From positions 248,001 through 312,000 of the forward strand of contig DF236975.1 of assembly GCA_000708835.1 (NCBI GenBank): a DNA stretch of 64,000 bases, written 5' to 3'. Below the pieces are notes generated by a model. It did not search any database. It worked only from the letters and a program-made list of their open reading frames with translations, and was not told the DNA's origin. Positions 1 to 54,189 of the stretch are shown piece after piece. A program made the position numbers and the translations under genes. The DNA is from Klebsormidium nitens. Taxonomy: Eukaryota > Plantae > Klebsormidiophyceae. Positions within the stretch are counted from its first letter, which is position 1. Each line of letters opens with the position of its first letter.

Positions 1-2196
1 GGTACTGGGGCCAATTCGCGCCGGGGGTCGACGCCCCCCGGATCTCCAGCTGGCACAAATGCGCGGCCAGAATCTCAGCCATCCGCTGCTGCGACTCGTC
101 GTAGTGCCTGCCGGACCCCCCTGAAATGGGGATGGGAGACGAGGCGGGACTCTGGGATGCTGCGACCAGAGCAGCCGCCAGCTGAGCCTGCTGAATCTGC
201 TCCTCGATGCTGGGCAGTTGCAAACGGGGGGGGAGGGATGAGGGACGTTCCAAACGGGGGGTTCCCGTCGGGGCCTGGCTGCGGGGGGGCATCTGATTGT
301 TGGGGTAGTTTGAGGCTCTGTATGATTGGCGCGGGCTGAACGGTGCCGTGTGTCCCAGGGGGGACATGGGAGGGACCTGCTGACCCCCCCCCAGAGAAGG
401 ATTCGAGTTGTAGTACGGCTGTGCGGAAGCGGGGGACCCCGGCTGGATTGGCGAGTACGCATTGTCAGGGCTGCAGGGGGGGGATGAGGGGGGGGTAACG
501 GGGGCGGGGAAATTGCGTTGTGGCCGATGAGAATGGACGTGGGGGACGTCATTTGGCGCTTGGTGGGAGAGCCCTGCTTTTGGTGGGGTTTGTCGGCGTG
601 GTTTGCGGCGGCGGCGGCGGCGGGGAGGAGGCGCAATTGCTCGGGGGTGTGCGCAAAGAAGCAGACCCTGCGGCGGCACTTGAGGCCGTCTTTGCAGGGC
701 TGGGTGTGGTAGCGGGCGGGGTGGAGCCAACACTCAAAGACGCCGTGCTGGAAACAGATGTAGGAGTGTCAGTATGGCTTGTAACTTGGTTTGTCAACAT
801 AAACCCATGCTGTTTGCTCCCTTGGACTTGAATCAGACGGAACCAGAAAACATTTCTGGATCCTGTCGGAAGTCAGGAGCAGCTTGCATAAATCACACTA
901 GAGGAAACCCAACTCAAGAAGCAGATGTCAACCCCGATGGCATTCATGCCAAAATGTATAAAGAATGCTCTGAAGCATCTTACTTGAACCAGGAAATTCA
1001 ATGGAAGGCAATTCAAAGTGAGGGTTATGTAATACAAGCCCAACACTGAGGAACTGGGCCTGGCTTCCGTGTCTTCTTGCACATAATAGACAAGAAGCAG
1101 ATTGAGCTTACAGCAAATTCGCAGGCATCTCCCCTTCTGCAGGTCCCTTTCCGGAAGTCTGGGCAGGCGGTTCCACTGTAATGATACTTCCGGGGGTCCC
1201 TTCTGCAAACCGAGACAAATAACTTTGTTTAGAGCTGTTTTGTCCAATAATGGCCAGGACAACTGAATTGCAAGCTTACTGTGCCATGAGAGGTGGCAGG
1301 CAGTTTGAGCTAGGAAAGCATCCGGAGCAGCTGAGAACATCTACTGGGAGCTTGATAAGGGTCTGCAAAAGACCCAGCATGCAGTAGTCACCAAAATGAT
1401 GGCTACTTCAAATACCAGGCTTTCTTGTTGGAGTGTCCAATGAAGAGTAACTCTGAACAGCTCAACCTCCGACAGTGAAAGCTAGACTCAATCTGGAACA
1501 AAGAACTTCTCCCCATTTCCTTTGCTGGCAATCCAAGTTGCATCAAGAGGCCTATCACCAGATAAACCTGCTGACAGGCGGAAGCAGAATGTGCCGCCTT
1601 CTGGACAAGCCAGGTAAGGGGGGTGACATTCGAGCTGAGATGTTCCAGAAACCTTCAATATGCTCATCATTGCACGCATAAAGGTTGGAATCTGGCTCAA
1701 GGTAAAATCATGAGCTGGCACAGTAGACTGCTTGATGCTGGCTCCAGCTTCTAAACCGAGCTGAACTGAGCTAACCTCACCTTCTTGCCTTCTCCCCAGG
1801 GTGCGCAAAGGGACACTCGGTCCAGTCATGGCTGCGTCCCCTCATGCAGCGCCGCACCTTAAACTCGTACATCCGAAACTGATCACATGAGTAGATGTCG
1901 AGACCGCCCTCGCCCTTCTCATGCCCCCACTGCTCATCGTCAGTGTCCTTCCTCGGACCAAAAGCAGACATGGCCCTCTCTACTTCTGCATCCAGGTACT
2001 TGGAAGAGTCCCTGTGCGCCTGGATCGCAGCGGCCGCAGCCATCAGATCGGCCGCATAGTTCTGGAGAGAAGAGACCTGTCTCGGGCTGGCAATATTGCG
2101 CCCCTGCTGGTCTCTGTTCTCCTCCAACCGCAGAGCGTGGTATCGGGATGCGTCCGACGCAGACGGGTACGCCATCGGCTCTTCAAACATCATCAT
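1..2196 (-). CDS. Plant arginine-rich tandem CCCH zinc-finger (RR-TZF) RNA-binding protein, 3' end beyond window start
   Basis: Exons 2196-1781, 1202-1112 and 747-<1 (GT-AG, phases consistent) splice to [108 protein letters not shown], the diagnostic plant RR-TZF signature. The C-terminal tail appears to change frame at G runs near 488-495 and 226-233. Confidence 0.92.
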
Positions 2197-20720: not shown

Positions 20721-23700
20721 TTAAGCACAGACTGGTGTGGCTCCCGGCAGACCGGGGCACAGCCCCGGGCAGCAGATAAACGCAGAACCGTCAGAGTTGA
20801 AGCACTGCGCGCACAAAAGCGGTCCCACGAATGAGCCGCGCACTTAGATCTATAAAGTTTCGAAATAGTTCCACAGTTCGTTCGGATAAGGAACTCGGTG
20901 CAGCAATCTGATGCAGAGTGAAGCGTCAGCTCCTGTTTTGTCTGTGTAGCCACGGCGCCGCAGTGCTGCGGGGTCTCTAAAAAGCGCTGAAACGATGCTT
21001 GTTCAATCATACTAACATAATCGGTGTACCGATTCAGGGATGAACTGGCTCGAAGTAAAGCCCCCGTGATTTCAACTATTCAAGAGTAAGGGGGATCGAA
21101 CCTCAGCTGCAGCGTCCACATCCAATCTCATGCCATCTGATCAACGAAGCACAAGGTGACTGAGGAACAAAATCACCCAGGAAGGCTTCACCCGACGTGA
21201 TCAACTGACAACAGGACCCGCCTCAGAATCCTGCCTAGACGCCCTGCACTTGACCTTAACCCGGTTTTTACTTGCCTGGTTAGAAAGCGGAGACGCCGGG
21301 TTGCACGTCGTCGGAGGCGCGGTGGGCCTAGGCGTTCCGGTGGGAACGTTCGTCGGGGCGACGGTGGGCGCGCCCGAGGGAACGTCAGCGGTCGCGCAGG
21401 CGGGGGTGGGCATGGGGGGAGCGGGGCACCCCACCCCGGCAGGACAGCACGTGTAGGATGAGCCGGTCGCGTCGAAGCACTGCAAGCGCGGGAAGTTTGA
21501 TATTGTCAGGTTTTGGAGGGGGTGTTGTGGCCTTGGCATTTGAGGTTTTTAAGACAAGGAAGGGCAGGAGAAGCAAAAACTAATGGGTGTCAGGAATGTG
21601 CGTGGGAATCTTGGAACGGGCTGAAACAGAGCGAACGAGCTTGACGGCCTGCAATTTACCGTTAATGACGCCGAGCATGAAGGTCGCACGCGGTTGAAAA
21701 TTTCACGGAGCAAAGAGTGAGAAAGAACGGGAGACTCGAGCGACAACGAATCCAATAGTTGTACCAGGGGGTCGATGTCGCCATGAGATCTTTAAACTCT
21801 TGTAGCTCTTTCGAGAAAACAAACGCACTCAAAACTGAACGATGGCCGTCTCTTCAGCGAGCATCTAATGACGTTTGACAACACAGGGCTCCAGCCGATT
21901 GAGAGAGGTAACATCATCTGGCCGATTACAAACGCTTTCGCTTGGAAAGCAGTTTCTGACGATCCAAAATGAGGTACTCAGCCTTTCAACTACGCAGCCG
22001 TCCGAGTTTGAAAGGAGGAAAGGCTCTTTCCAGCCCACCTGATTCGGGAGCGATGATGAGGCGTCGCACGTGGTGCCGACCGGGAAGACGGTCGGTACCG
22101 TCGCGGTCGGCGCCGGAGTTATGGGGGCGAGGGTGGTCGGGGCCGGGGTGGTTGCCCCGGGGGTTAGTCGGCGCCGGAGTTGCGGGGGCGAGGGTGGCCG
22201 GGGAAGGAGTGGTCGGGGTACAGCTCGGGGTGCCAACAGCCGGGGGGGTCGGGCACTGAACGGAAACAAAGAATCGAGTCAAACCGGAACGAGCGGAACG
22301 AGCTCAAAAGCGGAACTGTCCTAATCAAGATCCCAGCCACGACGCTTTTGAGCAGTGGCTCTGACGAGTTGCTTGGAAGCGGTCTTGAAAAAAAGCCCCG
22401 AAGGCCTAAACAGGTGCCTTTTAGCAATGTTCCGAAGGACGTGGGGGGCTCCAGTGCAAATCCTAGCTGACCGCCTGACACCTGGCAGTGCTGAGCTACA
22501 AGCACGTGACAAAAGGCTTAGCCGCTGAGCTTGGGGCGCTTGCTTCAGATCACTCTACTTGCTCGCGCGGCCCACGTGCGCGGAGCCGGTTTCTCGTCGT
22601 TTGTCGGTGCTTCGACGAGTCTTAATTAAAGCCATTCACAGGGACCGGATACTCATTCGAGCCGTCAGCAATCGCTCGCACACGCGTCAGATTTCTAAGC
22701 CCGCCTTCAGTCCCGCAACCTGGAAGCTCGACAGACGTTCGGAACTTCAGTCTCTTTGCGTCTTTCGAGAAAGGCATACGTACCTGGCCGGCGCAGCAGA
22801 TGGACTGGGAGCCGTCCGAATTGTAGCACTGGTTGGCGGTAGCGGGTGAGGACAGGCACGTGCCGTCGGGCCCGGGGAAGGCAGAAGAGGGCACGGTGGG
22901 AGCGGGAGTGGTCGGGGCAGGGGTCGTCCCGGTGTCACGCTGTAGAGGCTCGTTGCCGTGGCTCATCAGAGTTNNNNNNNNNNNNNNNNNNNNTGTCGTG
23001 ATCCTAAAACCCTAGAATCACCCAGAGATTCGGTCCCTAAATGCCCGTATCTCAACAAGGTTCCCTGAAAGCTGTTTCAGGCGCGAAGCTTCATATACAT
23101 GAGCAAAGTTGCTAATTATTGGAGTTCGTGCGTCCACACTTTTCTTTGATATCACTGATCGACTACGTTGATGCGCTTTGATAAAAAGTGGTCCAATACT
23201 TGATGGGCTCTTTCTTTATTGGTGAGTTATTCAATAAAATGGGTTCAGTTGCTGATGGGCTGTTCACGCAAAGCTTCAAGTTGTCTTCTGAGGCCTTTCT
23301 CGCATGCCTGGCTGCAAAAGCTGCTGGGCAGTTCAACTTTATGCCACGATCAAGCAATAATTCGCGGATTTAAAAGGTGGGCGCACTCAATTCAATACAT
23401 GAGCAAGGCAATGATGTCCGTTAGATTTTGTGGGTCGAAACTTCAATCTGGCCGCAAATCACTACTTCTCAACCCACCCTCCATTCTGGTTCAGGTTCGA
23501 GGAGAGCGCGTACGAGGCGCTCCAAGCGGCCGCGAAGGACTACCTCGTCGAGCTGTTTGAGCAGGCCAACCTCTTTGCCGTGCACGCGAAGAGGGTGACT
23601 TTGATGCCCGCGGACTGGGAGCTGATGAGGAAGCTGAGGAAGAAGGAGTTCCGGAATCCCTTGGGAATGGCAGCGTTCTGGTAGCCACGAGAATCAGGAC

Positions 23701-26700
23701 AGTGTGGGGAAAATAACATAAGCCTTGCTGGCAGTTGTACAGAGCTACAGACGGTCGAGATAGTAGCTTTACAGATGAGACTCGAAAGTAGTTGTCGACG
23801 AGTTCGTTCTAACGGTAATAATTGTGCACTGTAATGAACGCAAGATCTTGACGTTGTAGAAAGGAGCTTTCAAGCCATGATTTCATCCCTCGTGATGACC
23901 AGGACATACACTCCAACGCCCAGAGATGTTACAATCCTCTTGCGAGCTGATAAACTCATTTGACGGGCACCAAACCCATGTTTGTGCATGAAATGATGGG
24001 CATAGGATGGTTTTGCGCGGCGCTTCCGATCGACATCCAATCGTATGACAGATTGGACCATTTGCGCGGCTTGCGGCATCGAACGCGCCGACCCGGCACT
24101 ATACGGCATGCTAGCGGCAGGTGCCGGCGCACAGACGGCACTCGCCGGCGCACAGACGGCACTCGCCGGCGCCGTGCTGTGCCGGAGTGGTCTTGACGGT
24201 CGCGCCGGGCGGCATCAAGGGCCCATATGACCCGGCACGGACCGAGACCGGCGGCGGCACTAACATAGCCGTCCGGCACCGGTCCCGGTTTCCACGGCCG
24301 GCATCACCCTTGTCTGACCTGTGAAAAGCTCAGCCGCCCGGCCCGAATTTGCGCCGGACCGGCGCTCTTGGCCGCCGGACCGGCGCCGCAGGGCCACATG
24401 CGGCAGCTCCGAGGTACTCGCGGCATACTGGCGGCACATATACGGCAGGGAGAGCACAGGGGCGGCACTCTTCCGGCATACCGGCGGCGAGACAGGAAAT
24501 TTCCGATGTTGCATCCGGAAGCAAGGTTTGACACTGAAGTAATATGCGTGCCAAGGATGTCAAGAATCAGTACTATACCATCCAAATGTTCCAGTGTGGG
24601 TTGATTCTCATCATTTCAAGCTATCAAGCGGTGGGTATACAGTCGCTTGCGAAGCCGGAATAGCTCGATCCTGAAGATGATCCTTGTCTGTTCTCGTTCA
24701 GGGGTCATGGTCTTCCAGTGATCGGGAGTCTGTCACGCTGTAGAGGCTCGTTGCCGTGGCTCATCGGAGCTGCGCGCGCGCGCGAACTTTGTGAGCCGTT
24801 GATATTAGGGCTCGACCCGATCAGACGGCTGTAGGTTGCTGCAGTTTGTAGTCTACTATGTGTAGACTCGAATGCTGAGTGACTGCGGCCAGCCCTATAA
24901 GCTGGACCCGAAAGTTGCTGATGCAACTTTCTGTACGTTGCTCTAAGAAGGAGGAAGGCGCGCTATGGCGGCCTAGTGAGACTTCCATAGGCAGCTTTTC
25001 TTCATGAGCGCCAAAGCAGAAGTTCCCTGAGCACATGTGTTTGTGCTCTTGTATGTAGTGCGTTTTGCGGTGTGCGACATGGCGGCGTGGCGGTGTGCCA
25101 CTTGACATTCCATCATAAGCGGGGTGCTTATATTTGGTAGCCAGCTAGTTTTGTTGTTGTTGGATTGGCATGATGCAACGCGTAGATGATGCGGAAGAGA
25201 TGCTGGTGCCGAGGCGCTGCCGCAGCGATAGAGTACCTCATGATAAGTCTGCGTTTCACTCTAGGGCATATGAGCCTTTTCCGGCCACCCCTTCTTGCCA
25301 GCAACGTGATGCAGTCGTTCTTCAGCTGTGGTCGCTTCCATTTTGGATCAACATATGCGGCTGCGCTCCGTCAAGAACTGACCTCCATGGGCGCCCGGAA
25401 GTGGACAGGTGCGAAACGCTTTCTCTAATTTAGGCGTGCTTCGCTGATGAGAATGGTACGAGAAAGTGTTGAGATACGGGCATTTAGGGACCGAATCTCT
25501 GGGTGATTCTAGGGTTTTCGGATCACGACGTCGACGGTAATTCGATGGTAACTANNNNNNNNNNNNNNNNNNNNGAATTCGCGCTATGGCGGCCTAGTGA
25601 GGTCTTCAATGGCAGCTTCTCTTCATGGGTGCCAAAGCAGAAGTTCCCTGAGCGCATGTGCTTGCGCTCTTGTATGGCGTGCGGTGTGCAACTTGGCGGT
25701 GTGCCAAGCGGATCGGTGGGTCCATCATAAGTGGAATGCTTATATTTGGTAGCCAGCTAGTTTTGTTGTTGTTGGAGTGGCATGATGCAACGCGTAGATG
25801 ATGCGGAAGAGATGCTGGTGCCGAGGCGCTGCCGCAGCGATAGAGTACCGCATGACACCGGTGCCGGTAGGTACAGGGGTGGTCGGGGCGGGAGTGGTCG
25901 GGACGCAGCTCGGGGTGCCAACGACGGGTGGGGTCGGGCACTGGAAATGATAACAACAAACGAGATGATTAATTGTTGGATCTAGAATGTCTGGAGGCGC
26001 TACTCGGGCCGGAACGCCAAAGAGCAGCGCACGTCTGGATTCTGCCTCTGGAAGCAAGACGCACGACAGAAAGTTTGGCCGCCAGTTTTGATCTTTCAAG
26101 GGAGCTTTGATCTGCTAAGATGCAACGTCGCTTCAGACCGTTTCGAGCCAGACTCATAGTGATTTGTCGCGACAATTGGAAAGATAGCATCGAAGCCGCC
26201 TTAAAAGCAATTGTGCTCTGAAAAGTTGCGCGGGGATATTTCACCGGAGTCGCTCTTACAACGGTGGTTTCTTGAAGACCGCTACGCACCCTGTCTATGC
26301 AAACCTATTTTTGCGAAGCTCGGTTTCCCAACGGAGGAGTCCGCTATTGGAGCCGAAGGAACGTCAAAAGGAACCTACAAACCGAACCTTCAAAAGTCGG
26401 GTAGTGAAGAAATGAACTGCGAAATGTGGATGCAGCTAAACGCGGCAAGCGGCCGGGGCGACCCACCTGGCCGACGCAGCAGATTGACTGGGAGCCGTCC
26501 GAGTTATAGCACTGGTTGGGGGAGCCAGGGGAGGACAGGCACGTGCCGTCGGGCCCGGGTTGGGCAGAAGAAGGCACGGTAGGAGCAGGAGTGGTCGGGG
26601 CAGGGGTCGTGGAAGCAGGAGTGGTAGGTTCAGGGGTGGTCGGGGCAGGGGTGGTCGGGGCGGGAGTTGTGGGGGTGGGGGTCGTAAGTGCGGGGGTGGT

Positions 26701-29700
26701 GGTCGGGGCAAGAGTGGTTGGATCCGGGGTAATGGGAGCCGGCGTGGTCGGCTTTGGAGTGGTCGGTGCGGGGGTAGTAGGGGCCGGAGTGGTCGGCTTG
26801 GGAGTGGTTGGAGCGGGGGTAGTCGGCTTCGGAGTGGTCGGGGCGGGGGTGGTCGGTTTTGGAGTGGTCGGGGCAGGCGTGGTCGGTTTTGGAGTGGTCG
26901 GGCGGGGGTGGTCGGCTTTGGCGTAGTCGGGGCGGGAGTTGACGTTGGGAGAGCCGCGAAAGGCACTGCAAAAAGGAATCGAGGATAAATGCTTGATGCA
27001 TGCAACCCCGGTTCTCCGACCTTTCCTCGAACATTCCTGACCATGTGCAGAGTGAATCGTGTTGACAATGACGTAATGGCGCTCTCACTAAGCACTCCCA
27101 AAGCAAGTGTTTCACCATCTTCTTGAAACGTCCATCCCCAGACGCGAAAGCCGAAGGACCTTTCGTGGCCCAGCTTGCCAGTTCAGTGACTCTATCTCGC
27201 GGAAAACAAGAAAAAGCTTCTCGCTTGGATACTGTGCTGGCAAGTCGAAAAGAAAGCAGTAGAGAAAACGTATGCGGAGAGCTGGCGCTTCAAACGATCC
27301 GAAATTTCGGTTTTGGGGGGGTAACTTACGCAGAGTGTTGCAGTTCATGCTAGAGGACCCCACGCGCTTGTTGTCCGCGTCGTAGACGACCTGGCACGGG
27401 AAAGGAAAGGAACGTGAGGCATCGAAACAATGGTCAGAAATAAGAAAGGAACTGAATTGGGGGCAGGGTTCTTTGCAGAACCTTTTGGTGGGGAGTCCAA
27501 AACGGGGACGCTTTTTGGAAAAGATGAGGTTGCAGACAAGATGTATATTGAAGCTGGTACAAGACGAGCTCGCGGATGCTTTTGCTGAGGGGATGAGGAC
27601 TGTTATCTCGCAGGGTTAAGCAAAAAATAATAATCAGGAGAGGCTAGCCATCACATTTTCGAGAGGGCGTTTTTGATGGTCAGATCATCGGGCGCGGTCG
27701 TTGTTCGGCTTAGCGGGCGGCGTATTTACGGTTACCAGATTACTGTAGGTTATCTGGCGGGGTTGTTTACTGGGTTACCAAGCGGGGTTAACGCTTACCA
27801 GGTTGTCGGTCGTGAAACTGGGGCCGATTTTGCGGACGGGGGGCGCGTCCGGGAAGGCCGCGTCATTTGGCCCCCCGTCGAAAATCCCGATGCTGATCTG
27901 CTCATTGTTTGGGTCCAAAGGGGTGATGTACGACTTGGGCCGCGCCACGATCTGCGTGCCGGGCAGCTGGATCGTGAGGACGGGGAAGCGCGCGTAGAGC
28001 TCCTCCGGGGAAAATGTGACGAACGTTGCGGGGCAGAGAAGCAGGGTGGATCAGACATTTTCGATTCGTTGGGGTTTCACATTCATAGGGTGATGGGATG
28101 TGCCTGATTTCTCTGGGTCGCACGTCTCCGGCCGGCGCCTGGGGCGCTCTACTCTTTTGGCTGATTTCAACAAGAGAGACATTGCTGGCGAACCCCCCTC
28201 TAGTTTAGGCGGTACGTGGCGAGGGCTGGATGCTTTGCTTGGATAAACAAAGCTTTGGTTAAGCCGTCTAAAACGCCGCAGCGCGCGCCTGAAAGTCTCC
28301 TCTCGGCCTAGGAATCTTCCGCGAACGCGGAAAAGCATTTAAGTTGGCGCTCACAACGAGGACGTCGCAACGTCGGGCGGACATTTCCTCTCATTGCAAG
28401 TTATGATATAGAGCTTGGCGGGAAAGCTAATGTCAGGCCTCCAGTCTGGAAGGATCAAGGGCGGGGGGGATGAAAACTTACGAGGGGTGCAAGTCGTGGT
28501 GCTGCAAAGACAAGCAAGACAGGGGGCACGCGTCAGACGAACTGGGAGCTTACGTAAGGGCCAATGGACCTTGGAATTTTCTTTGCTGGTGCGCTGGTCG
28601 GGCCTCAAACCGAAGTGCGCACCAGACACCAGGTCGAAAGCTTTGTCTGGAGGTCTGAAAATCCATGACATGCAAATCTCAGCGACTTTTAGAAAACGGG
28701 TTGCCTTTCACGGTGGTACTGACCGTCCACACTCGAGCTCTTAACGAAATCAGACAGTGGTGCCGTCTTGACCTTCGCCAGGCGTACCCTGACGCAATCA
28801 AGGCACGAACAGAGAAAACGCGGATGCTCACTGGTTCGTGAATGTTTCCGGCGCGTGCTGAGACTTTTGCGGAAGGTACGGTTCTTCTTTCACCGGGCGT
28901 CAAGCAACCGATAGATCTTTAACAAACAGCATCGTTTCGAGATCGACGACCGACAGATTCGTTGACATACGGCATCATTTCGAGATCTGCACGGAACGCT
29001 TTGAGCTTTTGTTTTGGACCCATAGACATGCTTCCAATGCGCTTAGGATCGCGGCGGAGCTCACTCGATAGCTTCCAGGCCGCCAAAGTTCTGAGAATTG
29101 GGGCAGCCGGTGGCGGTTTTGACGGCGGCGATCAAGCTGTTGAATAGCGCAGTACTGAGTACGGACGATACGGTGCCTGTAACGAGAGTGGAGTGAAAGT
29201 TGGCACTGAAACGAGGAACTCGGGCCGGCAGCTGGCTGCCCGAGAGAACGGGGGTGCGTCAGGGGCCAGGCAAGTCGGCCGAGAACTCTGTGAGTGGTCT
29301 CCAATCACGTGCTCTGAGGACAATCAATGGGATCAACAAGCCGTTTCGAGCAGCATGAGAAAATGGCTGTCCTTCAAGCCGGTTGCAACTCGAACGAAGA
29401 CTTTCCACTTCAGCATTGTACGCAGTCCACAATTCAGAGGGAACCCCCGGAACATCATGCTAGAACGTCAGCAGTGACAAGACGTTACGACCACGTTGAA
29501 AAGACGTCACAAAAACGTCACACAAAGAATGCAGACACGGCGCATACAAACGGTCCAAATCCTGGGACGCAAGGACTTTGATGCGGCAATCTCATAGTGG
29601 AACCCACGATCCATTGGCCCCCCCGCCAAAGGAAACTTTACAAGGAATACACAAAGACGTTACAGAAGTGTTGCAAAAGAAGAAGCGCTTTGACTCGGAA

Positions 29701-32000
29701 TCTTACTCGAGTCCAAGATCCACGTGGCCCCAGTATCTGCCGTCAGCGCTGCGGCAGCCCCCGGCACCGGGGCGCCGTTGAGCAGGACGTTTGTCGGGGC
29801 CGGGGTAGACCAGAACGGGGAGTTGGTGTTAATAGGCGGGGTGGTATAGCTGACTGCGTAGTTGGCACCGCCGGGCTGTGTGGGCACCCCCCCGAGGAAG
29901 AGCGTGCCGCCGGTGTCAAAGCCGGAGGCGAGGCACAGGCCGAACGTGGTGGTTGTCAAAGCGCCCACCTGGTGAAATTGGGGGGTGGACATGTTTAGCA
30001 CGAACTTTGATTTAGCAATGCTGTGCTTTAGGAAGAGTATGCTAACCAGCCTAGGACGGGTGGGGTTAGTTTGGGGTTTAGGGTGGGTATATACAGGTGC
30101 GGAGCATGTGGTCTTGTGGGTTAAGATTTCGGTTTTACTTTAGAAGCTTACTATTGCTAGAGCTTACTATTGCCAAACTGTCAGATACCACGTCAACTGT
30201 TACTGAGGTTTGTTTCTTTGGTCGTTGATGGTAATGGTGGTTGTCAGGATTTGGATCCAAGCTGTGAGCTGTAAATCATGACAGTATTTGTTGACACGGC
30301 CAGAGATTTCAAGGCAGCTGGAAGCAATGTCCAGCTGTATCAAATAGTAAGAATACAAGATAATTGAATGGCCATTTGTCTAGTTTGCATCTCTAGTACT
30401 CTGCATTGCAAACCCTTGGCTGCATTGCTTTTGCAAGTACTGATGGAAAGCAACGCCCCAACACCCTCACTTTTTCCGGAAGGCTTAGGTTTTGGGCGGA
30501 AATTGTTACCTTGGTTTGAGACTTTATAACCTGCTCTCACAATCTGAGATAACACAGCCTCAGGAAAGTAATAGTCCAGCCAACTTTAGAAGAGGTGACA
30601 CGGGTCACTTTCACATTGAATGGACCTGAAAATGAAAACTGTATGAAGGTGAGGAACATAAAAGGTATGGTAGCGCAGATTGGGAAGAGGTTGCTTCTAT
30701 GATCAGATAAGGCTCAAGAAATGAGATTGCTGGCAAGGTTAGAGTTAATGATAAGCCCTTAGACCCTAGCATTCTAACCCTGGGTGCTGCCAGTGCACCA
30801 CAGAAAGAAATAGTAGACCTGAACAACTCAGATTCCTCTTGGGAGTAGAGGAAGCAGACACCAAAGCACCTTGCTTTGACACTGAACCTGAAAAGCTGAC
30901 ACCAATGAAGCCAACACCCGTCAATTGAGAGCAGTGTGACAGCATGTAAAGATTAGGAAACCCGCAAATTGAAAGTGACGTCTGAAACTGGGCACACCAA
31001 ATTTGACGACAAGACTGACAAACCAGAACTGAATATTTGGAACAGCAATCGAAAGTCTCAATGTGAAATGTTCATGGAAGCGTGGAGCCTTGGTTTTCCG
31101 GCCTTCTTCTGCTTCTGCTTCTGCCCTCTTCTTCTTCTGCTGCATTTTTCAGGACAGGTTTGATGTGCTACATTTTCGACACATAAGCCCAGAATCTGAA
31201 AGTAAGCGCCTCCCACAGGATTACCCACCTGCTTCAGCTGCGCCGGCAGCGACGCTCCTGCGGGCCCGAACCCCACCTGCCCGGCGTTGGAATCATTGAA
31301 GTACTGAAAGATACTGGTTCCGAGGAAGATGCGCGCGGTCCCGGTGGACACCGACCCCAACGCCACCACGTCCCGGAGATACGGCCCGGCCGCGCCCCTG
31401 TTCAGGTTCTGAATCTCAAACTGGCACCCAGTGGAATACGCGGCCCCCAAGCACCCGGTGGCCCCGAGCCCCCCCGCAGCGCACTGGTCGCACGTCGCGT
31501 TGGAGAGGGCCGTGGTCGAAGAGGCCGGGTCGTACTTCGGCCCCTGGTAGAAGCAGAACGAGGTGTCGGCATCAGGCAACGGGTTTTGGTTGGCGGCAAT
31601 TGGCGGCCCCGGGGCAAGACCGGCACTGCGGGCCCTGGACGAGGTTCACGTGGCTCCCCGTGTCGACGATCAGGGGGAGCGTCACGGGGGGGGTGCCCAC
31701 CTTCACGTCCACTGTGAACGTGAACTGAGTGAGGAACCCCCCCCCGAGGGCCATGCCGGGGGTGGCAGCCAACAAGCTCCTCCTGCTGACGTCAGAGCTT
31801 GCATCTGCTACGTTGCGGAAGTAGGCGGCGCGGGTAGCAACCTGAGCTGCGACCTCGTCAGCGGAGAACGAGCGCTGCGTGACGGGTAGGGCAATGCTCT
31901 GGGCGGCAGCAGGCGACAGCTGGCAGATCAGGGGGGCGGCCAGCAGGGCCAGCAGGAGGGCGCAATGCAGGCGGAGTGGGGGCGCCATGTTGCTGATCAT
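20721..32000 (-). CDS. Secreted pepsin-like (A1) aspartic protease fused to Pro/Thr mucin-like stalk and four Cys6 modules; interrupted by an LTR-type insertion and several 1-nt indels
   Basis: Exons 32000-31229, 29968-29707, 29176-29065, 28501-28482, 28025-27799, 27390-27330, 26965-26467, 25940-[insert]-22784, 22255-22039, 21479-21276, 20804-20721. The product has a signal peptide ([33 protein letters not shown]) and a propeptide ending RRSLL. It then shows [80 protein letters not shown] (A1 family hallmarks), followed by PTTP repeats and Cys modules. Stop TAA is at 20721-20723. Confidence 0.82.
22974..22993. other. Assembly gap (20 N)
   Basis: Run of N. Confidence 1.
23495..23684 (+). pseudogene. 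Orphan 3' exon of a divergent histone H3 / CENH3-like gene
   Basis: After acceptor TTCAG (23490-23494) the frame reads [63 protein letters not shown]-stop. This is the H3 histone-fold alpha2-L2-alpha3; my manual count is 30/49 identities to canonical H3. No N-terminal exon is found between the TIR and the acceptor. Confidence 0.8.
24074..24480 (+). repeat. Strand-polarised CGGCA motif array including a 21-bp tandem repeat
   Basis: About 17 CGGCA on the + strand versus about 2 on the - strand in ~410 bp. CCGGCGCACAGACGGCACTCG is tandemly repeated at ~24124-24170. Confidence 0.6.
24731..25245. mobile_element. Solo LTR, 515 bp, 4-bp TSD AGTC
   Basis: Begins TGTCACG (24731) and ends CATGATA (25245). 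It is flanked by AGTC at 24727-24730 and 25246-25249. Its 5' end matches 22933-22966 and its 3' ~280 bp match 25580-25857. Confidence 0.82.
25555..25574. other. Assembly gap (20 N)
   Basis: Run of N. Confidence 1.
26580..26940 (-). repeat. Coding 15-bp tandem repeat encoding ~22 PTTP(A/K/E) pentapeptides
   Basis: Units such as CCGACCACTCCAAAA / CCGACCACCCCCGCC on the minus strand. They are seen as GVVG(A/F) repeats in the antisense ORF 26516-26926. Confidence 0.9.
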
Positions 32001-47130: not shown

Positions 47131-50100
47131 ATGGCGCCACGTGTCAAAAGCAGAGCAGTCTGGACGAGGGTGGCTCTGTCGTTGGTGGTGCTTTCGTTGG
47201 GGGTAGCAGGTAAATCAAAGGCGCGAATTTGCTTCACAATCTGGGTCAAGCAGGTCCGCTTATTCTTGCTGTCATCATTCAGAGCACCGGAAGATGCCAC
47301 GGAACTTTTGATTCGTACGGGCTCTTACAAACACTATCTGTACAACTTGGAAAGGATTACACACTAGCATCTTTAAAGAAAGGGCATGCTTTAAGGGGAC
47401 GACACTGTCTACGGAATCTGATCTGAACAGTAAAATGTCGACGTTCAAGTGACCGGAAGCTGCACAATCGAAGCGGACCAATTCGGATCCTCCTCGGAAG
47501 GTCTTACGCCGAGTCGATGCGACAATGAGCAAATCATGCTAGCTGCCCTTCGACATAGATAAAAGATAAGAGCTCCAAGAAGAGGCTTTTCCTTGATGAC
47601 TTGCTATTCTTAGTATTGAAACTGAATTTAGAATATCTTGTCGATCCAGACGCACGTCTTATATTTCCACCCGACTTCCCAAGTCCCCAAGGAACAGTGC
47701 GCCTGCCGACCGCGCTCGCGAACCCAATAGCCGTGGACTTCACCAAGCTGCCTCAGTATCCAAGGGCGGGCGTTACCTTCTTCACATCAAGAGTGGCGGC
47801 GATTTTGCAAGGTGCGAGTACTTTTCAACTATGATCCTCGTGACCTCAACGGTCTGAGTGATGTTTCTACTGTACTTCCTGAGTATTTCGGGCCTTTTGA
47901 ACAAGTCTTCCTATTTCACCAGCATCAGAACGGCTTGTTTTTCTTTGTCGTCTCCCAGCCGAAATCAGCCGCCTGCGTTGTAAGCTGGTTTGCCCACCTC
48001 CCCCAAGTCGAGCAGATTTTTCCAACCCGTGATTCAGCCCCTTAATCTGGGCTCCCTTTCGCCCTACAGGCTCGGTCTCTGTCCAAGTTCCACCCCCGGG
48101 CATGAACGGTCAACCGCTCCAAAAGACCTCAGTCCAGTACACGATAACCGTTGGCTGGGACGTTCTCCAAGTCACCATCGTAGCCGCCGACCAGCCGCTC
48201 TACCTGAACCAGCAGAAGATCCCCCCAGGGCAAAAGTCGAGCCCGGTTTACCTCGTCGGCCAAGTCACGATCCTCTCGGTCCTCGCAACCACCGCCCAAG
48301 ACGTCGCTTTGCGGACGTACGTCATCTACGTTTACCGTCCGGGGGCTCCCCCCGGGCTGGAACTCCCCTCCGCTCCACCAGTAGGAACCGCGCCCGCTTC
48401 GGGGGGGTCTACCAGCCCCCCGGCGGTGATCATTCCTGGAGCCCCTTCCCCCCCAAAAACCCCCACAGGAACACGAAAACCGCGGCCCCCCCGGACGTCC
48501 GCCCCCGTGTTTCCGCCCGGGGGATCCCCCTCTCCACCCTCGCAAGGGGCACAAACGCCCCCCTCGGCGAATAGCCCCCCGGGGGCGACCTCCGGTCCAT
48601 CCAACCCGGTTCCAAACCCGGTCTCCACGCCTGGGGGATCCCCCTCCCCCGGAGCAAGTGCTCCGAACACTCCTTCTGGGGGTGTTCCGGGGGCAACGCA
48701 GAGTGGTCCGCCTGCTTCGGGGGGATCCCCGGGGGGCAGTGGGTCTAACGGCGGGAGCACACCAGCCCCAAGCAGCGGAGGGGGTTCGCCGCCAGGGGGC
48801 AGCACGGGTGGCCCCCCCGGTTCGGGGGGCAGCACTTCCGCCCCTGGTCCGAGCGTAAGCGGCCCCCCTGGATCTGCGTCGGGGGGCGGCACAAGCGGCC
48901 CCCCTGGAACTGGAGCGGGGGGCACGAACGCCCCCACAAGCACTGGTGGGGGGACCCCTGACTCTGGTAGTGGCACCGGGGGGAGTCCTGGGACAGGGGG
49001 ACAGGGCACGGGCAGCGGAAGCCCAACGCAAACCCCCGGAAGTGGAAGCGGAACCGGAAGCAGCAACGGGGGAACTAACTCTCCAGGGGGGAGCGGTTCG
49101 AGCCCAGGGGGGGGCACGACGCCCTCTCCCTCCAGCCCGAGCAGTGGGGGAAGCCAAGCCCCCCCGGGGCTCAAGGACCCCCCGGAAACGGGAATGGCAG
49201 TGGAGGTAATGGGGGTTCTGGAAGTGGGGGGACTCCAAGCACCGGGGCGCCTGGCAGCGGTGGGGGGGGCGACGGTGGGAGTGGGGGAAGTACTGCGGCC
49301 CCGGGAGGTAACGGGGGGGCAGGCGGGACTGGAAGCCCCCCGCCCGAAGAAGGATCACCGACGCCGGCGGGAAGTCCCAACAGCCCAGGACAAGGTGAGT
49401 TTCGAGCAGCGGGATGAGTAGGGGCTGACCAGGTTCTGCTCACTGTTCACGTCTCTTGCTTGATTCGTGAGCGGAGAATTGGAAGCTCAGTGTCCGTTTG
49501 CTTGCAGTTTAGAACTGAATAGCCATGTTTAGAAACGATTCCGGTTTGAAGCAGCTTTAACGTGATTCGGGAGCCCGTCTTCAATCTCGGTTGACGGCCT
49601 GGTGTGCTCATGGTTACGCATTGAACACAAGCAATCAAGAAACAATTGCCTGGGCTGGATCGCTTTTCGAACACAGCGGATCTCCCCAACTAAAACAATC
49701 AGTCGACTCCGCTCTCTTTGAGTCCCTTCGGCCCTTAGATTTGCTTGCCGGTTTTGGAGCCAATTTGAAAAGTTCGCGTGCTCGTTATTCTGGTAGCGAA
49801 GGGTGCTAGCGCTATTATGCCAAGCGCTGCTTAATAGGACGAATCCGAGAGGCAAACCTGCTTTGGGAGCTGGTCTGAACTCAAGGTGCTCTGCTTTCGG
49901 CTTCCTTCGTCTAACGAAAAACTAAGAATCCCAAGTATTTGAACCTTTGGGGTGTCACCCCAAAGCTTTCTCCATCTTGTTGCATTTGGCGACCGTGCGG
50001 AGCGGCCAAAATTGTGCAACGTATTTGGCTTTCGTACGAACCGCATGGGAATCCAGCAACGCACTTTTCAGAAACTTCCTGCCGTTACAGGTGATCGACA

Positions 50101-53100
50101 AGGGTTTCGAGAATCTACGCTTCGGAATGGGGAGTTGAATGTAGACCCCTCTCGTCGCCTAGTGCGAGTCGTCCGCAAAGTGCCAGCCAAGTTCTAGTCT
50201 TTTTTTTACAATTTAGCTACTAACATGATTTCGATCATCAGAATACTTGCAAGTTTGGTATCGCGCGCACTCAGGATACACGAAACTGCTTCTCAAGCGA
50301 GTGTAGAGCTGGCGGCCTCTCTCCCTTGAGGGTTCCAGCAAGTGGATGATATGTGTCTGTTGCGAATCCATGTTGTAGAAAGTATTACGAAGATGCAGTA
50401 TGAACTTTCGGGCAAGTTGGAATGTTCCACGACGTTTACGTGTATTCAAATGGTCCGCCTTGATCAACTGTCAGCGCCGGACGGTTCTATTCACGCATTG
50501 AACGCTTAAGGACACATACTGTAAGAGGTGTTTTACCGGTGACGTACACGTCCGCCAAGGCAAGGAGCTCAATCTTTATTATCAAGTATCCAACTCATGT
50601 TTTCTGTAGATGTGAGGTAGGTCTTGGCCAGCTTTCAAGCTGATCATCAACTTTCTGGCTGGAACATCAAAACCAAACATTCTTCTACCTACTACGAAAG
50701 GATTGAACAAGCATATGAGTACCTCTGATCCGTCGGTTTGCAGGCAACCCCGGCAGCACTCCTTCGCAGCCGCCGCATGGGGGGGCTTCGGGACCCACTC
50801 CCGAGCAAGGGGGGGTCAGCACCAACAGCCCCGGTGGGGGGGGCAGCACGCCAAGCCCCGGGGGAAGCAGTTCGCCCGGCGGAACAGGATCCCCGGGCAG
50901 CGGAAGCCCCCCCGCTGGGAATGGGGGGGGAAGTGGCACCCCCCCAGAAGGAAACGGGGAGGCGAGTGGAAGCCCTCCAGGAGGAAACGGAGGGGCGAAT
51001 GGCAGCCCCCCGGAAGAAAACGGGGGGACGAACGGCAGCCCGCCAGGAGGCAATGGGGGGGTCAATGGCAGCCCCCAAGGAGGCAATGGGGGCGTGAATG
51101 GAAGCCCCCCGGAAGGGAACCTGGGGGGATCTGGCAGCCCACCCGGCGGAAACGGAGGAGCGATTGGCAGCCCCCCGGGAGGGATCGGAGGCGCGATTGG
51201 CAGCCCCCCGGGCGGGCACTGGACCCCCCCGAGCGAAACAGGGGGGAGTGGCAGCCCACCATCGAGTGGAAACGGCGGCGGAAGCCCGCCAGACGGGTCC
51301 GGAGGAACAGGAAGCCCGGGAAGCGGAAGCGGAAGCAACAGCCCACCGGAAAGCCCCCCGACCGACGCACCCGGCGCAGGTGGGTCTCCGACGGAGTGGC
51401 CAGCGCCCCCTGCTGATGGGCCCGCCGGCGGTCCTTCCGTTGGCAGCCCTCCGGATTCCGCTGGCCAGCCGACCGCGTCTCCTGGGAGCGGAACCGGGGC
51501 ACCAGGCGAAGCCGCAGGCGCTGAAGGCCCGGCCGAAGCCCCGTCAGAAAGTCCGTCAGAAAGTCCGTCAGGTGCCCCGGGGGGGCCGATCTGCGTCGGC
51601 GCTTGCAACCCGGGCGGTGGGGCGGAGATCATCGTGACCGGTCAGGCGTTCGACAGTTACCTGCAGTCGTGCACCACGTTTGTGGACGTCAACGGAAACG
51701 GAATCCAAGATGCCGACGAGCCGAGCGGAATGACGGACCTCTTCGGGCAGTTCAACTTGTCGACCCCGGTGTACGCCCCCCTGGTTTTGCTAGCGGGGGG
51801 GGAGTGCACTGACGCCGCGACCGGGGTGCTTCTACCGGGCATTCTTTCCGCCCCTCCGGGAGCAACCGTGATAACCCCATTAACCACGTTGATAACCCAA
51901 CTAGGCACGCGACAGAACATCGAAGCGGTAGCGGCGGAGCGCATCTTGGCAGAGGGTCTCGGGCTCAACGTGAGCGCGGCGCTCACGCTGACGTCGACTG
52001 ACGTCATCGCGGCCGTGCTCGCGACCCAGGACGGCGCCGCGGCGCGCGTGGTGGTGCAGAACACGCGCGCGCAGAACGTCGCCGCGATGGCGGCCGCGCT
52101 GATGTCGGCCGGAGGCGACCGCGCGGCGGGCGCGGCCGCGACGTTCGGCTCGTTGGCGGACGCCATCTGGACGCTGCCGACTCCGGACAGCGGAACGGCT
52201 CAAGGGAGCGGCACGAGCGAAGGCGACGAAACGGATGCACAGCTTGCAACAGAAGCCAACAACGATACGACCGGGGGATCGAGCCCGGGAGCCGGCCAGG
52301 CCAGCCTGCAGCTTCGGCGGTTGCTGGGGATGCTCTCTGAGGGTTCCCCCGGGGGTTCGATTGGCAACTTGGACTCTCGGAGAAGCATGACCGGGGTTGA
52401 CGTCACTGTGGAGGACGGGTGTAAAGAGGGCGGTCTCGAAAGGCGGCCTCACTGCTCGCGTCGAGTCGAAGCGGGAACAAGCGGAATGAACGCAGAGCTT
52501 GAAGAGATGACTGCGTCGCGGCAAGGGTCGGGCCTGGAAGGAGATTCGAGCAACGGAAGACAGAATCTTAAAGGTCGGAAAGGAAGAAAGTTACGGCGCT
52601 TGTTGCAGGACGAAGCGGATGCGTCTGATAAGACAGCGGATTCGCCTGCCGATCTGACCGACCCAGTCTTTCTAGAGTCCGCTTTAGAAGGGGCGTACAA
52701 ACTGTTGTCAAATACTTCGGTCCGGGGTTTGCAACCGATGACGTCAACCAACGACAGCACTTTTGGCGCGCCGGCACTATCGGCCGACGACTTTGCGCTG
52801 GCGGCTTCGGCGATGGGGGTCGCAAACGCCGCCATGGACGCCCCCCTGGAAGCGTTTCTGCAGCTCAACCTGGCCGGTAATACCAACCGGTCCGCAGCGA
52901 TCGAGTTTCTGAACGAGATCTGGCGCCGCGCGAAGGTCGCGCAGTCGAACTTCGCGGACGTGCTCGTGCAACTAGGCGCGGGAGAGATCAACCGCACCGC
53001 GGCCGCGGCCGCGCTCTCGCCGGCCGCGTTCGAAAGCCTCGTGGCCAATACCACGCTCTTGGTATCTTCCGGGGGGGGCCAAGCGTCGCTTCAGGCGCAG

Positions 53101-54189
53101 ACTGGGGCGCCCCCCCCTCCGGGAGTGATCGAGTTGCCGGGGAGTGTGGTCGGGGGAAAGCACCGGGCGAAGTCGTGGGTGTGGATCGTGATCGGGGTGG
53201 CGGTCGGAGTGGGCGGATTGCTGCTCTGCTGCTGCTGCGGGGGGGTGGCGTACTACTGCTACAGAAGGAAGAAGAGTGAGCGATCAAACCCCCGGAACGG
53301 AAACTTTTGTCGGTTGTTACAGACTATTTCGTTCGCAAGCGAATTCGGTCGAAATAGAGCGAAACGCTCCCTTAGAGATATAACAGTTCCTCCTTAATTC
53401 TGATAGACCGTTCGGTCTTCATTCGACCCACAGAAGGTTTGAAATCTGTCAAGAAGATGGGACCCTATCCATGATCCTCAAAAGCCGATGTGTCTTGTAG
53501 GTCAAATCGTTCCTCCTTCCTCTAGATGCGGCAGTCAAATTGAACTCGCATGGATCACCCCAATCCGTTCGTGCATCAGGACATGTATTTACTAACTTTC
53601 TTCGTGTCAAGCCTCATAAACAGCGTGGAACTACGTTATTTTCTACTGTTGCTCAACACAAGAGGCCTGCGAAACTGGTGGACTTTGTCCTCGTGACTTG
53701 AACGCTCTCCTTCCACGTATTCAAAGCGTCGAACCTTACCGAAGAGCATCGAAGGATACTTGTCCTGACTCACTTTCTGCTTTCGCGCGCAAAGGGACGA
53801 ATCCCAGTCTGTTAGGACGAGTTTTTCGACCCACTCTTTCTCTCTCTTCTTCAGACCGCCGAACGGGCCACCGGGGTGCCGACCCCGAGCAAGGCCCGCC
53901 CATCAGCCCCCGTCGCTGGCCGTGGAGTCCCCGCCCGGTGGCTTCCTCCGACCACTCAACACCGCCCACAGAGGAATCCCCCGACGTGGCCTCCCCGGTA
54001 GAAAGTCCCCCGGTTTCGCCCGGGGCAATTCTCCGGAGCCATAGCATAGCCCTTCCCCCGAGCACGCACTTATTACCGGTGGCCGCCCAAGCGGAAACCG
54101 CGCGAGAGGCGCCGCCGGGGGTGGACGAAACGCCGCAGGAGACGGCGTTTTCGACCCCCCGGTCCGGGATCTCGTCCGATTCGGACTGA
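47131..54189 (+). CDS. Type-I membrane surface glycoprotein: signal peptide, cadherin-like beta-sandwich, Gly/Ser/Pro stalk, cyanobacterial-exoprotein-like domain, TM helix, Ser/Pro-rich cytosolic tail
   Basis: Exons 47131-47209, 47632-47811, 48070-49394, 50744-53275 and 53855-54189, all with phase-1 junctions; one missing base in the C7G4 run at ~49160-49169. SP: MAPRVKSRAVWTRVALSLVVLSLGVA. Beta-sandwich: VQYTITVGWDVLQVTIVA..LYLNQQKIPPGQKSSPVYL..TILSVLATTAQDVALRTYVIYVYR. Second domain: AFDSYLQSCTTFVDVNGNGIQDADEPSGMTDLFGQF..TDAATG..LSAPPGATVITPLTTLI. TM: WVWIVIGVAVGVGGLLLCCCCGGVAYYCY followed by RRKK. Confidence 0.82.

Follow-up and report, generated by a model that had tools for sequence, protein, structure and literature searches.

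Evidence for a Klebsormidium aspartic protease gene with a Pro/Thr-rich tail of six-cysteine modules, and for damage in one of its copies

Overview

The stretch of DNA analysed here (the window) comprises 64,000 nucleotides of the Klebsormidium nitens NIES-2285 scaffold DF236975.1 (positions 248,001 to 312,000), and all parts of the gene in question, an aspartic protease gene with a cysteine-rich tail, lie on its minus strand. Klebsormidium probably possesses a family of TAXi-type proteases that are spliced to a Pro/Thr-rich linker and to modules that may serve as wall tethers, the copy in the window being a damaged member. An earlier note, made from the letters of this DNA, had proposed that protease, Pro/Thr linker and disulfide modules make up one gene. 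This design was confirmed, the junction being present at three loci and one K. nitens paralog (P0006) being annotated as a single protein. The length suggested there, about 900 amino acids (aa), agrees with the ~897 aa that the design yields when the defects are read past, but the assembled copy does not encode an intact protein. It carries six lesions: three frame breaks, a lost splice acceptor, a change of the catalytic DSG to DSS and a transposon-type insertion in a linker exon.

Protease exons and the junction with the tail

The protease part consists of the following exons (exon borders are marked by a slash throughout; the public model places the start of exon 1 at 32000):

31229-31988, minus strand: exon 1, with the MAPPLRL start, signal peptide and N-lobe with DTGS at 31664-31653; frame break at ~31589-31586
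29707-29968, minus strand: exon 2, ending in ..WILDS followed by A/GTAAGA, a phase-1 donor
29065-29176, minus strand: exon 3, not part of the public model P0001; with it the C-lobe motif is completed to D-S-S-T
28482-28501, minus strand: mini-exon of 20 nt, cag/CACCACGACTTGCACCCCTC/gtaagt; its counterpart in the paralog is L005:5017-5038
27799-28025, minus strand: exon 4, whose ancestral acceptor (28027-28026) reads AA
27330-27390, minus strand: final protease exon plus the single base C, with donor C/GTAAGT

The final protease exon opens with cag/GTC GTC TAC and closes with ACT CTG C/gtaagt (27390-27330). Its donor joins in phase, over a phase-1 intron, with the acceptor tttttgcag/TG CCT TTC at 26965, so that the direct splice from the last protease exon into the tail (C/GTAAGT at 27330 to gcag/TG at 26965) was found as the earlier note had described it. 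The same L/L-P-[FL] phase-1 junction (..CTG N/GTAAGT ... gcag/TGCC) is identical in the window, in the K. nitens locus L005 and in L002. The latter is a contig of a more distant relative obtained in another sequencing run, and its Pro/Thr repeats start just before the contig end.

Locus L005, on DF237111.1, encodes P0006, a K. nitens paralog of 764 aa whose protease is 47% identical to that of the window and which is annotated as one protein. The order of its parts is signal peptide, Asp/TAXi_N/TAXi_C domains, ..VNCDTL-LPLAPASS.., Pro/Thr linkers and the same modules. The tail follows the same exon plan, and in the conserved frame it ends with CFNADGSAFTCCSGPCPGTPGNTPSCT and a stop codon. The last exon of the paralog (L005:9942-10019) is 73% identical to the last exon in the window, and both end with ..C-x and stop. 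In a third paralog, P0007, the next gene follows without a tail in between. When exon 1, the exon 21548-21204 and P0001 were used in word searches, the only matches were K. nitens proteins and three relatives from SRR23617307. A scan of JGI metagenome contigs with P0006 gave 504 pattern matches, 0 of which were confirmed.

For length and composition a joined reading was made by script, with a residue X placed at each of the three breaks. It comprises ~897 aa with a tail of 418 aa (26% Pro, 23% Thr, 5.7% Cys). Searches, family scans and fold predictions were run on single exons or on database proteins, and the intact P0006 stood in for the joined model. In the joined reading, no hydrophobic C-terminal signal, transmembrane (TM) segment or hydrophobic stretch was found anywhere in the tail, which ends in ..PVCA; that the protein lacks a TM or glycosylphosphatidylinositol (GPI) signal at its C-terminus was thus upheld.

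Tail exons and the four modules

The tail is encoded by six exons without a start codon or signal peptide of their own:

26467-26965, minus strand: Pro/Thr linker exon, built of 15-nt repeat units, with Cys1 to Cys4 of module 1; frame break at ~26900
25857-25940, minus strand: Cys5 and Cys6 of module 1 and the start of the next linker
22784-22939, minus strand: linker and Cys1 to Cys4 of module 2; the acceptor ctacag/ lies inside element X, an insertion described below
22039-22255, minus strand: Cys5 and Cys6 of module 2, linker and Cys1 of module 3; frame break at ~22160; skipped by the public model P0005
21276-21479, minus strand: Cys2 to Cys6 of module 3, linker and Cys1 of module 4; GC donor (CAG/GCAAGT)
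20721-20804, minus strand: last exon, Cys2 to Cys6 of module 4, ending ..PVCA; stop codon TAA at 20723-20721

The coding segments of the modules are distributed over these exons as follows:

26556-26467 and 25940-25905, minus strand: module 1, Cys1 to Cys4 and Cys5 to Cys6, respectively
22873-22784 and 22255-22220, minus strand: module 2
22083-22039 and 21479-21396, minus strand: module 3
21317-21276 and 20804-20724, minus strand: module 4

Cysteine modules alternating with Pro/Thr linkers down to the stop at 20721 had been described in the earlier note; four six-cysteine modules are indeed present, but the frame through them is not continuous. Every module is split by a phase-0 intron, which interrupts GQ/C in modules 1 and 2 and NQ/C in modules 3 and 4. 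The intron after the module 3 exon is of the GC-AG type (donor GC at 21275-21274 in CAG/GCAAGT); GC donors are rare but are known to be usable.

Modules 1 and 2 stem from an old internal duplication. Identity between their exons is 89% and 84%, but the introns, of 526 and 528 nt, cannot be aligned (z ~1.3), and the codon differences between the two modules comprise 8 synonymous and 5 non-synonymous ones. Similar exons, diverged introns and an excess of synonymous over non-synonymous changes argue that the tail exons were formerly selected as coding sequence.

A six-cysteine module on unrelated secreted proteins

The module spans ~41 residues with the pattern C-x9-QC-x9-CC-x3-5-C-x9-10-C and the recurrent motifs PNQC, G, CC and CP. 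The four modules of the window and three of the paralog align in 45 columns, and all of them fit the six-cysteine spacing. A 41-position profile built from these modules (A4) was compared with 1.84 billion representative proteins at E<=1e-3. Twenty-seven proteins were found, among them an unrelated repeat protein (P0031). In an alignment of 23 sequences (A6) five of the six cysteine columns do not vary and the sixth hardly does. The sources of 20 matches were K. nitens (13), a K. subtile transcript (1) and JGI/IMG or Logan records (6), and all matches whose source names an organism are from Klebsormidium (K. nitens or K. subtile).

The last module stops one residue short of the C-terminus in 17 proteins, and likewise in the window gene (..PVCA and stop). 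Most of the module-bearing proteins begin with a signal peptide. The partners of the module include dirigent/allene-oxide-cyclase-like barrels, an alpha-carbonic anhydrase, an LTD (UniRef name) and several domains that belong to no family. Two of the matches come from transcript-type records, namely the K. subtile Trinity assembly and the intron-free Logan contig L008, which carries the alpha-carbonic anhydrase. One protein, P0009, contains little besides modules, and internal or N-terminal copies occur in P0017 and P0013 as well as in the window (modules 1 to 3). Judged from these matches, the module appears to be a mobile add-on, so far confined to Klebsormidium, usually placed at the extreme C-terminus of unrelated secreted proteins.

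Beside these proteins, a module-coding stretch was noticed at L009:2802-2900, at the 3' end of a gene with a NAGPA domain (PF09992) and upstream of the gene for P0009, which has five modules. NAGPA is probably a further partner domain.

Pfam gave no match for the tail with any exon, P0005 or P0006 (E up to 1-10), and no usable module match was found in the ESM Atlas. Sequence profiles of the PDB yielded no match except a weak motif in mollusc hemocyanin, P.QC..ADGS...CC.HGMP, which recurs at the start of each functional unit (PDB 4yd9_A, residues 42-67, 1292-1318 and 1708-1735). The score is a sum over weak individual matches with independent E-values of 0.5 to 250, none of them significant, and the similarity is probably due to chance. 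Full-text literature searches found no paper on the protease-module fusion or on the module. That the architecture was not recognised in the earlier note therefore holds for the searched literature, but the fused protein is present, unremarked, in public databases, the genome having been published in 2014. Since no profile for the module exists, domain censuses of streptophyte algae miss it.

The protease family and its catalytic motifs

Separate exons of the window match TAXi_N in Pfam at E 3e-5, below the cut-off of 30 bits, the low score being due to the splitting of the domain over exons. P0001 has precomputed assignments to PF14543 and PF00026. P0006 scores 71-72 bits for Asp, TAXi_N and TAXi_C, over the Pfam cut-offs, and the window exons align with it over the entire protease. 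By these matches the locus is assigned to the TAXi-type (plant 'atypical') family of A1 aspartic proteases.

The two catalytic sites of the window copy differ in state. The N-lobe D-T/S-G motif is present (IVDTGSH at 31664-31650). The C-lobe site does not conform to it and reads ILD-S-S-T over the junction of exons 2 and 3. Its codons are GAC TCG A/../GC, where A/GC encodes Ser in place of the Gly (G/GG) of the paralog. DSG is kept in P0006, P0007, L002 and L003.

A further relative, P0008 (K. nitens KFL_015440010, locus L007), has D-I-F and D-A-G at the two catalytic D-T/S-G sites and may be a non-catalytic member similar to the TAXI xylanase inhibitors. The L007 contig stops short of any tail region of P0008.

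Lesions of the window copy

The frame of exon 1 breaks at ~31587, after ..CPGAANCRQ, in a stretch that is read in a single frame in the three SRR23617307 relatives, in P0006 and in P0007. A product of 142 aa, expected if the exon 1 frameshift is real, had no exact match on record. The second break lies in the Pro/Thr exon, ~20 codons from its beginning (~26900), at a CCCCCGCCCG run: here the repeat ..ccgaccacccccgcc-cgaccactcc.. is one C short compared with the subsequent units, and the frame entering from the junction at 26965 misses module 1 as assembled. In exon 22255-22039 start and end are in different frames, with a CCCCCGGGG run between them at ~22160.

The acceptor following the mini-exon has the sequence gcAA/CGTTC (28027-28026), compared with gcAG/C in L002, L003, L005 and L006, and no in-phase AG was found near it in the window sequence. 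An alternative assignment, in which LLLCPATF at 28044 was the counterpart of LTTCNPPF of the paralog, was rejected, as it amounts to reading a polypyrimidine tract as protein; the true mini-exon is 28501-28482.

The remaining lesion besides the DSS change is an insertion:

22935-25857, minus strand: insertion in a linker exon, composed of element X copy 1 and a gap-bounded contig; the exon is uninterrupted in the paralog
24733-25245, minus strand: element X copy 2, complete, 513 bp long, lying between copies of the 6-bp target-type direct repeat CAGACT
23239-23684, plus strand: annotated histone-like gene of 77 aa, representing only the C-terminal half of the histone fold (23430-23684)

Exons 25940-25857 and 22939-22784 are 2.9 kb apart, and both N gaps of the locus (25555-25574 and 22974-22993) fall between them and not in an exon. 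The matching stretch of the paralog is a single unbroken linker exon (L005:7952-8269). Copy 1 of element X is split into a 5' part (25857-25575) and a 3' part (22971-22935) with the target-type direct repeat CACCGG, likewise of 6 bp, at its flanks; if X and one CACCGG are taken out, ..PTGTGTTPAP.. is read in frame again. A splice between GT 25856 and AG 22940 would keep the frame too, with RDTG added; the GT of these candidate sites starts at the second base of X and the AG lies 5 nt from its end. The 513-bp element may conceivably be a transposon turning into an in-frame intron. The stretch between the gaps (22994-25554) is a separate contig that holds X copy 2 and the half histone fold and is bordered by a 63-bp inverted repeat (22995-23057 versus 25529-25467, 98% identical). 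It is either a nested element with terminal inverted repeats that sits in X, or a contig scaffolded there through the shared X.

Public gene models

GenBank holds two models for the locus. P0001 (KFL_000260450, a 476-aa 'peptidase A1', 32000-27112) omits exon 29176-29065 and the mini-exon 28501-28482, both of which were found by aligning the paralog protein to the window. It hides the break of exon 1 by removing 106 nt, at the expense of a conserved Cys loop, keeps its frame open only by skipping exon 29176-29065, and at its end reads through a consensus GTAAGT donor into the intron. P0005 (KFL_000260430, a hypothetical protein of 153 aa, 22966-21201) begins at an ATG within X and lacks a signal peptide; exon 22255-22039 is left out of it, and it continues past the last donor. 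The 476-aa and 153-aa models are the gene predictor's way around the damage. In the model of P0006 (L005:1828-10809) the frame chosen for the last exon is wrong, at the cost of the terminal module. Three public models are therefore wrong: KFL_000260450, KFL_000260430 and the end of the 764-aa paralog.

State of the window copy and alternative explanations

On balance, we regard the window copy as a recently inactivated or crippled paralog. A number of observations weigh against this view or against the tethering design in general. All three frame breaks are at homopolymer runs, the locus holds two gaps, and the assembly was made with Newbler, using both 454 and Illumina reads (PMC4052687), for which reasons some of the lesions may be assembly errors. 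The exons contain 0 in-frame stops, 24/24 module cysteines are kept and all splice sites but one are usable, a state to be expected both of a gene that began to decay very recently and of an intact one; GT 25856 and AG 22940 would allow in-frame removal of the insert. No transcript of the window gene or of P0006 was found by a word search whose span (0.55-1.75x the query) would hide a 900-aa product, and the fusion was therefore inferred from conservation and from an Augustus model. As to the module, AlphaFold2 produced a weak model of a single copy from 23 sequences (pLDDT, the predicted local distance difference test, 65.5; one beta-hairpin), and this model had no structural neighbour in searches with Foldseek on PDB and with VIA-align more widely.

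We judge it rather unlikely that the full ~900-aa protein is made from an intact gene, with the breaks as 454 homopolymer errors, the inserted contig mis-scaffolded, X spliced out like an intron, and both the AA acceptor and the DSS motif either errors or tolerated changes. The position of the breaks in runs of AAAA, CCCCC and CCCCCGGGG in a 454/Newbler assembly speaks for it, as do the absence of in-frame stops, the retention of all cysteines and nearly all splice sites, the in-frame removal of X and the constraint under which the module exons evolved. However, two of the lesions, AG to AA at 28027-28026 and G to A within the Gly codon, are substitutions, a kind of error atypical for 454 sequencing, and four relatives keep the AG and four the DSG. 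The lost acceptor has no in-phase AG nearby, the break in exon 1 can also be read as a 7-nt duplication, removal of X in frame requires the weak donor GTCATG, and the paralog from the same assembly has 0 of these defects. Recent inactivation or crippling is the preferred reading of the window copy.

The Augustus models in GenBank suggest yet another arrangement, two separate genes, of which KFL_000260450 would encode a protease of 476 aa and KFL_000260430 an unrelated Cys-rich protein of 153 aa. This is very improbable. The first model reads through the GTAAGT donor into the intron and skips a conserved exon; the second, which starts in X without a signal peptide, leaves out exon 22255-22039 and ignores the last donor. 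Moreover, the Pro/Thr exon, module 1 and the last exon are used by neither model, yet they are conserved in the paralog.

It is also conceivable that the design is real and that the module has another function, as a cross-linker in a matrix of hydroxyproline-rich glycoproteins, as a C-terminal sorting or quality-control signal, or as a released knottin-like peptide. The strict end, one residue from the C-terminus in 17 proteins, would be in keeping with a signal for recognition or sorting. Many small bioactive peptides have the C-C-CC-C-C pattern, and P0009 consists of little besides modules. On the other hand, the internal and N-terminal copies (P0017, P0013 and modules 1 to 3 of the window) would be needless for a purely terminal signal, and the linkers of the window gene show no apparent processing sites, dibasic or otherwise. 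We consider these functions improbable and retain the tethering design, with a damaged copy in the window.

Other features of the window

Apart from the protease locus, a GC-rich block was noticed at 48000-54000 (60-63% versus ~50% around it). It contains two long open reading frames on the plus strand, 48102-49421 (439 aa) and 51094-53397 (767 aa). No Pfam family was found for them at threshold, and the only similarity was one weak Cadherin-like match.

Discussion

In the proposed mechanism a secretory signal would export the pepsin-type domain on a long Pro/Thr stalk that carries four modules. Pro-rich wall proteins of plants and algae are hydroxylated and O-glycosylated, and by analogy the stalk may be modified in the same way. 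The most likely role of the modules would be to keep the enzyme attached to the cell wall or extracellular matrix, in the manner of the carbohydrate-binding modules (CBMs) of fungal and bacterial enzymes, and four copies could provide multivalent attachment and avidity.

A broader proposal, which is put forward tentatively, is that Klebsormidium evolved a general cell-surface tag, a genus-specific three-disulfide module on a glycosylated Pro/Thr stalk, with the copy number setting the strength of attachment. Such a tag might have spread by phase-0 exon shuffling to proteases, carbonic anhydrases, dirigent-like proteins and other enzymes, and would act like CBMs or GPI anchors. A link with a terrestrial life in biofilms and soil crusts is conceivable. 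If tethering proves true, the module offers a handle on the organisation of extracellular enzymes in an early-diverging terrestrial streptophyte alga, and it would be a compact, portable tag by which proteins could be displayed on algal walls. With an A1 protease fixed to a long stalk, proteolysis would be localised in the wall in a distinct manner.

Among known systems, hevein (CBM18) and the knottin types share with the module the C-C-CC-C-C order with its CC pair, the small size and the occurrence in tandem. The Klebsormidium module differs from them in its spacing (10-9-0-3..5-10) and in giving no Pfam match to knottin or chitin-binding families (E up to 10). The protease part resembles the plant atypical or nucellin-like A1 proteases, which include Arabidopsis CDR1, PCS1 and the GPI-anchored A36/A39. 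Common to both are the signal peptide, the pepsin fold of two lobes, the Cys-rich insert and the DTGS of the N-lobe, the lack of the plant-specific insert and the end at ..VVYD..RVG...C. The window gene differs in that a 418-aa tail of Pro/Thr linker and four Cys modules follows where the plant enzymes have a short tail or GPI/TM signal, and in that the window copy has DSS instead of DSG.

A parallel in layout exists with the fungal and bacterial glycoside hydrolases that carry CBMs, such as the Trichoderma cellulases with their CBM1. In the Klebsormidium protein the catalytic partner is a protease, and the module has six cysteines compared with four in CBM1, to which it has no match in sequence or fold. 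The arrangement itself is shared: a catalytic domain, a low-complexity Pro/Thr linker and a small terminal disulfide module. The likeness to such enzymes drawn in the earlier note was strengthened by the finding that the module is a C-terminal add-on on many unrelated secreted proteins; like the CBMs, it occurs with catalytic domains that are not related to each other.

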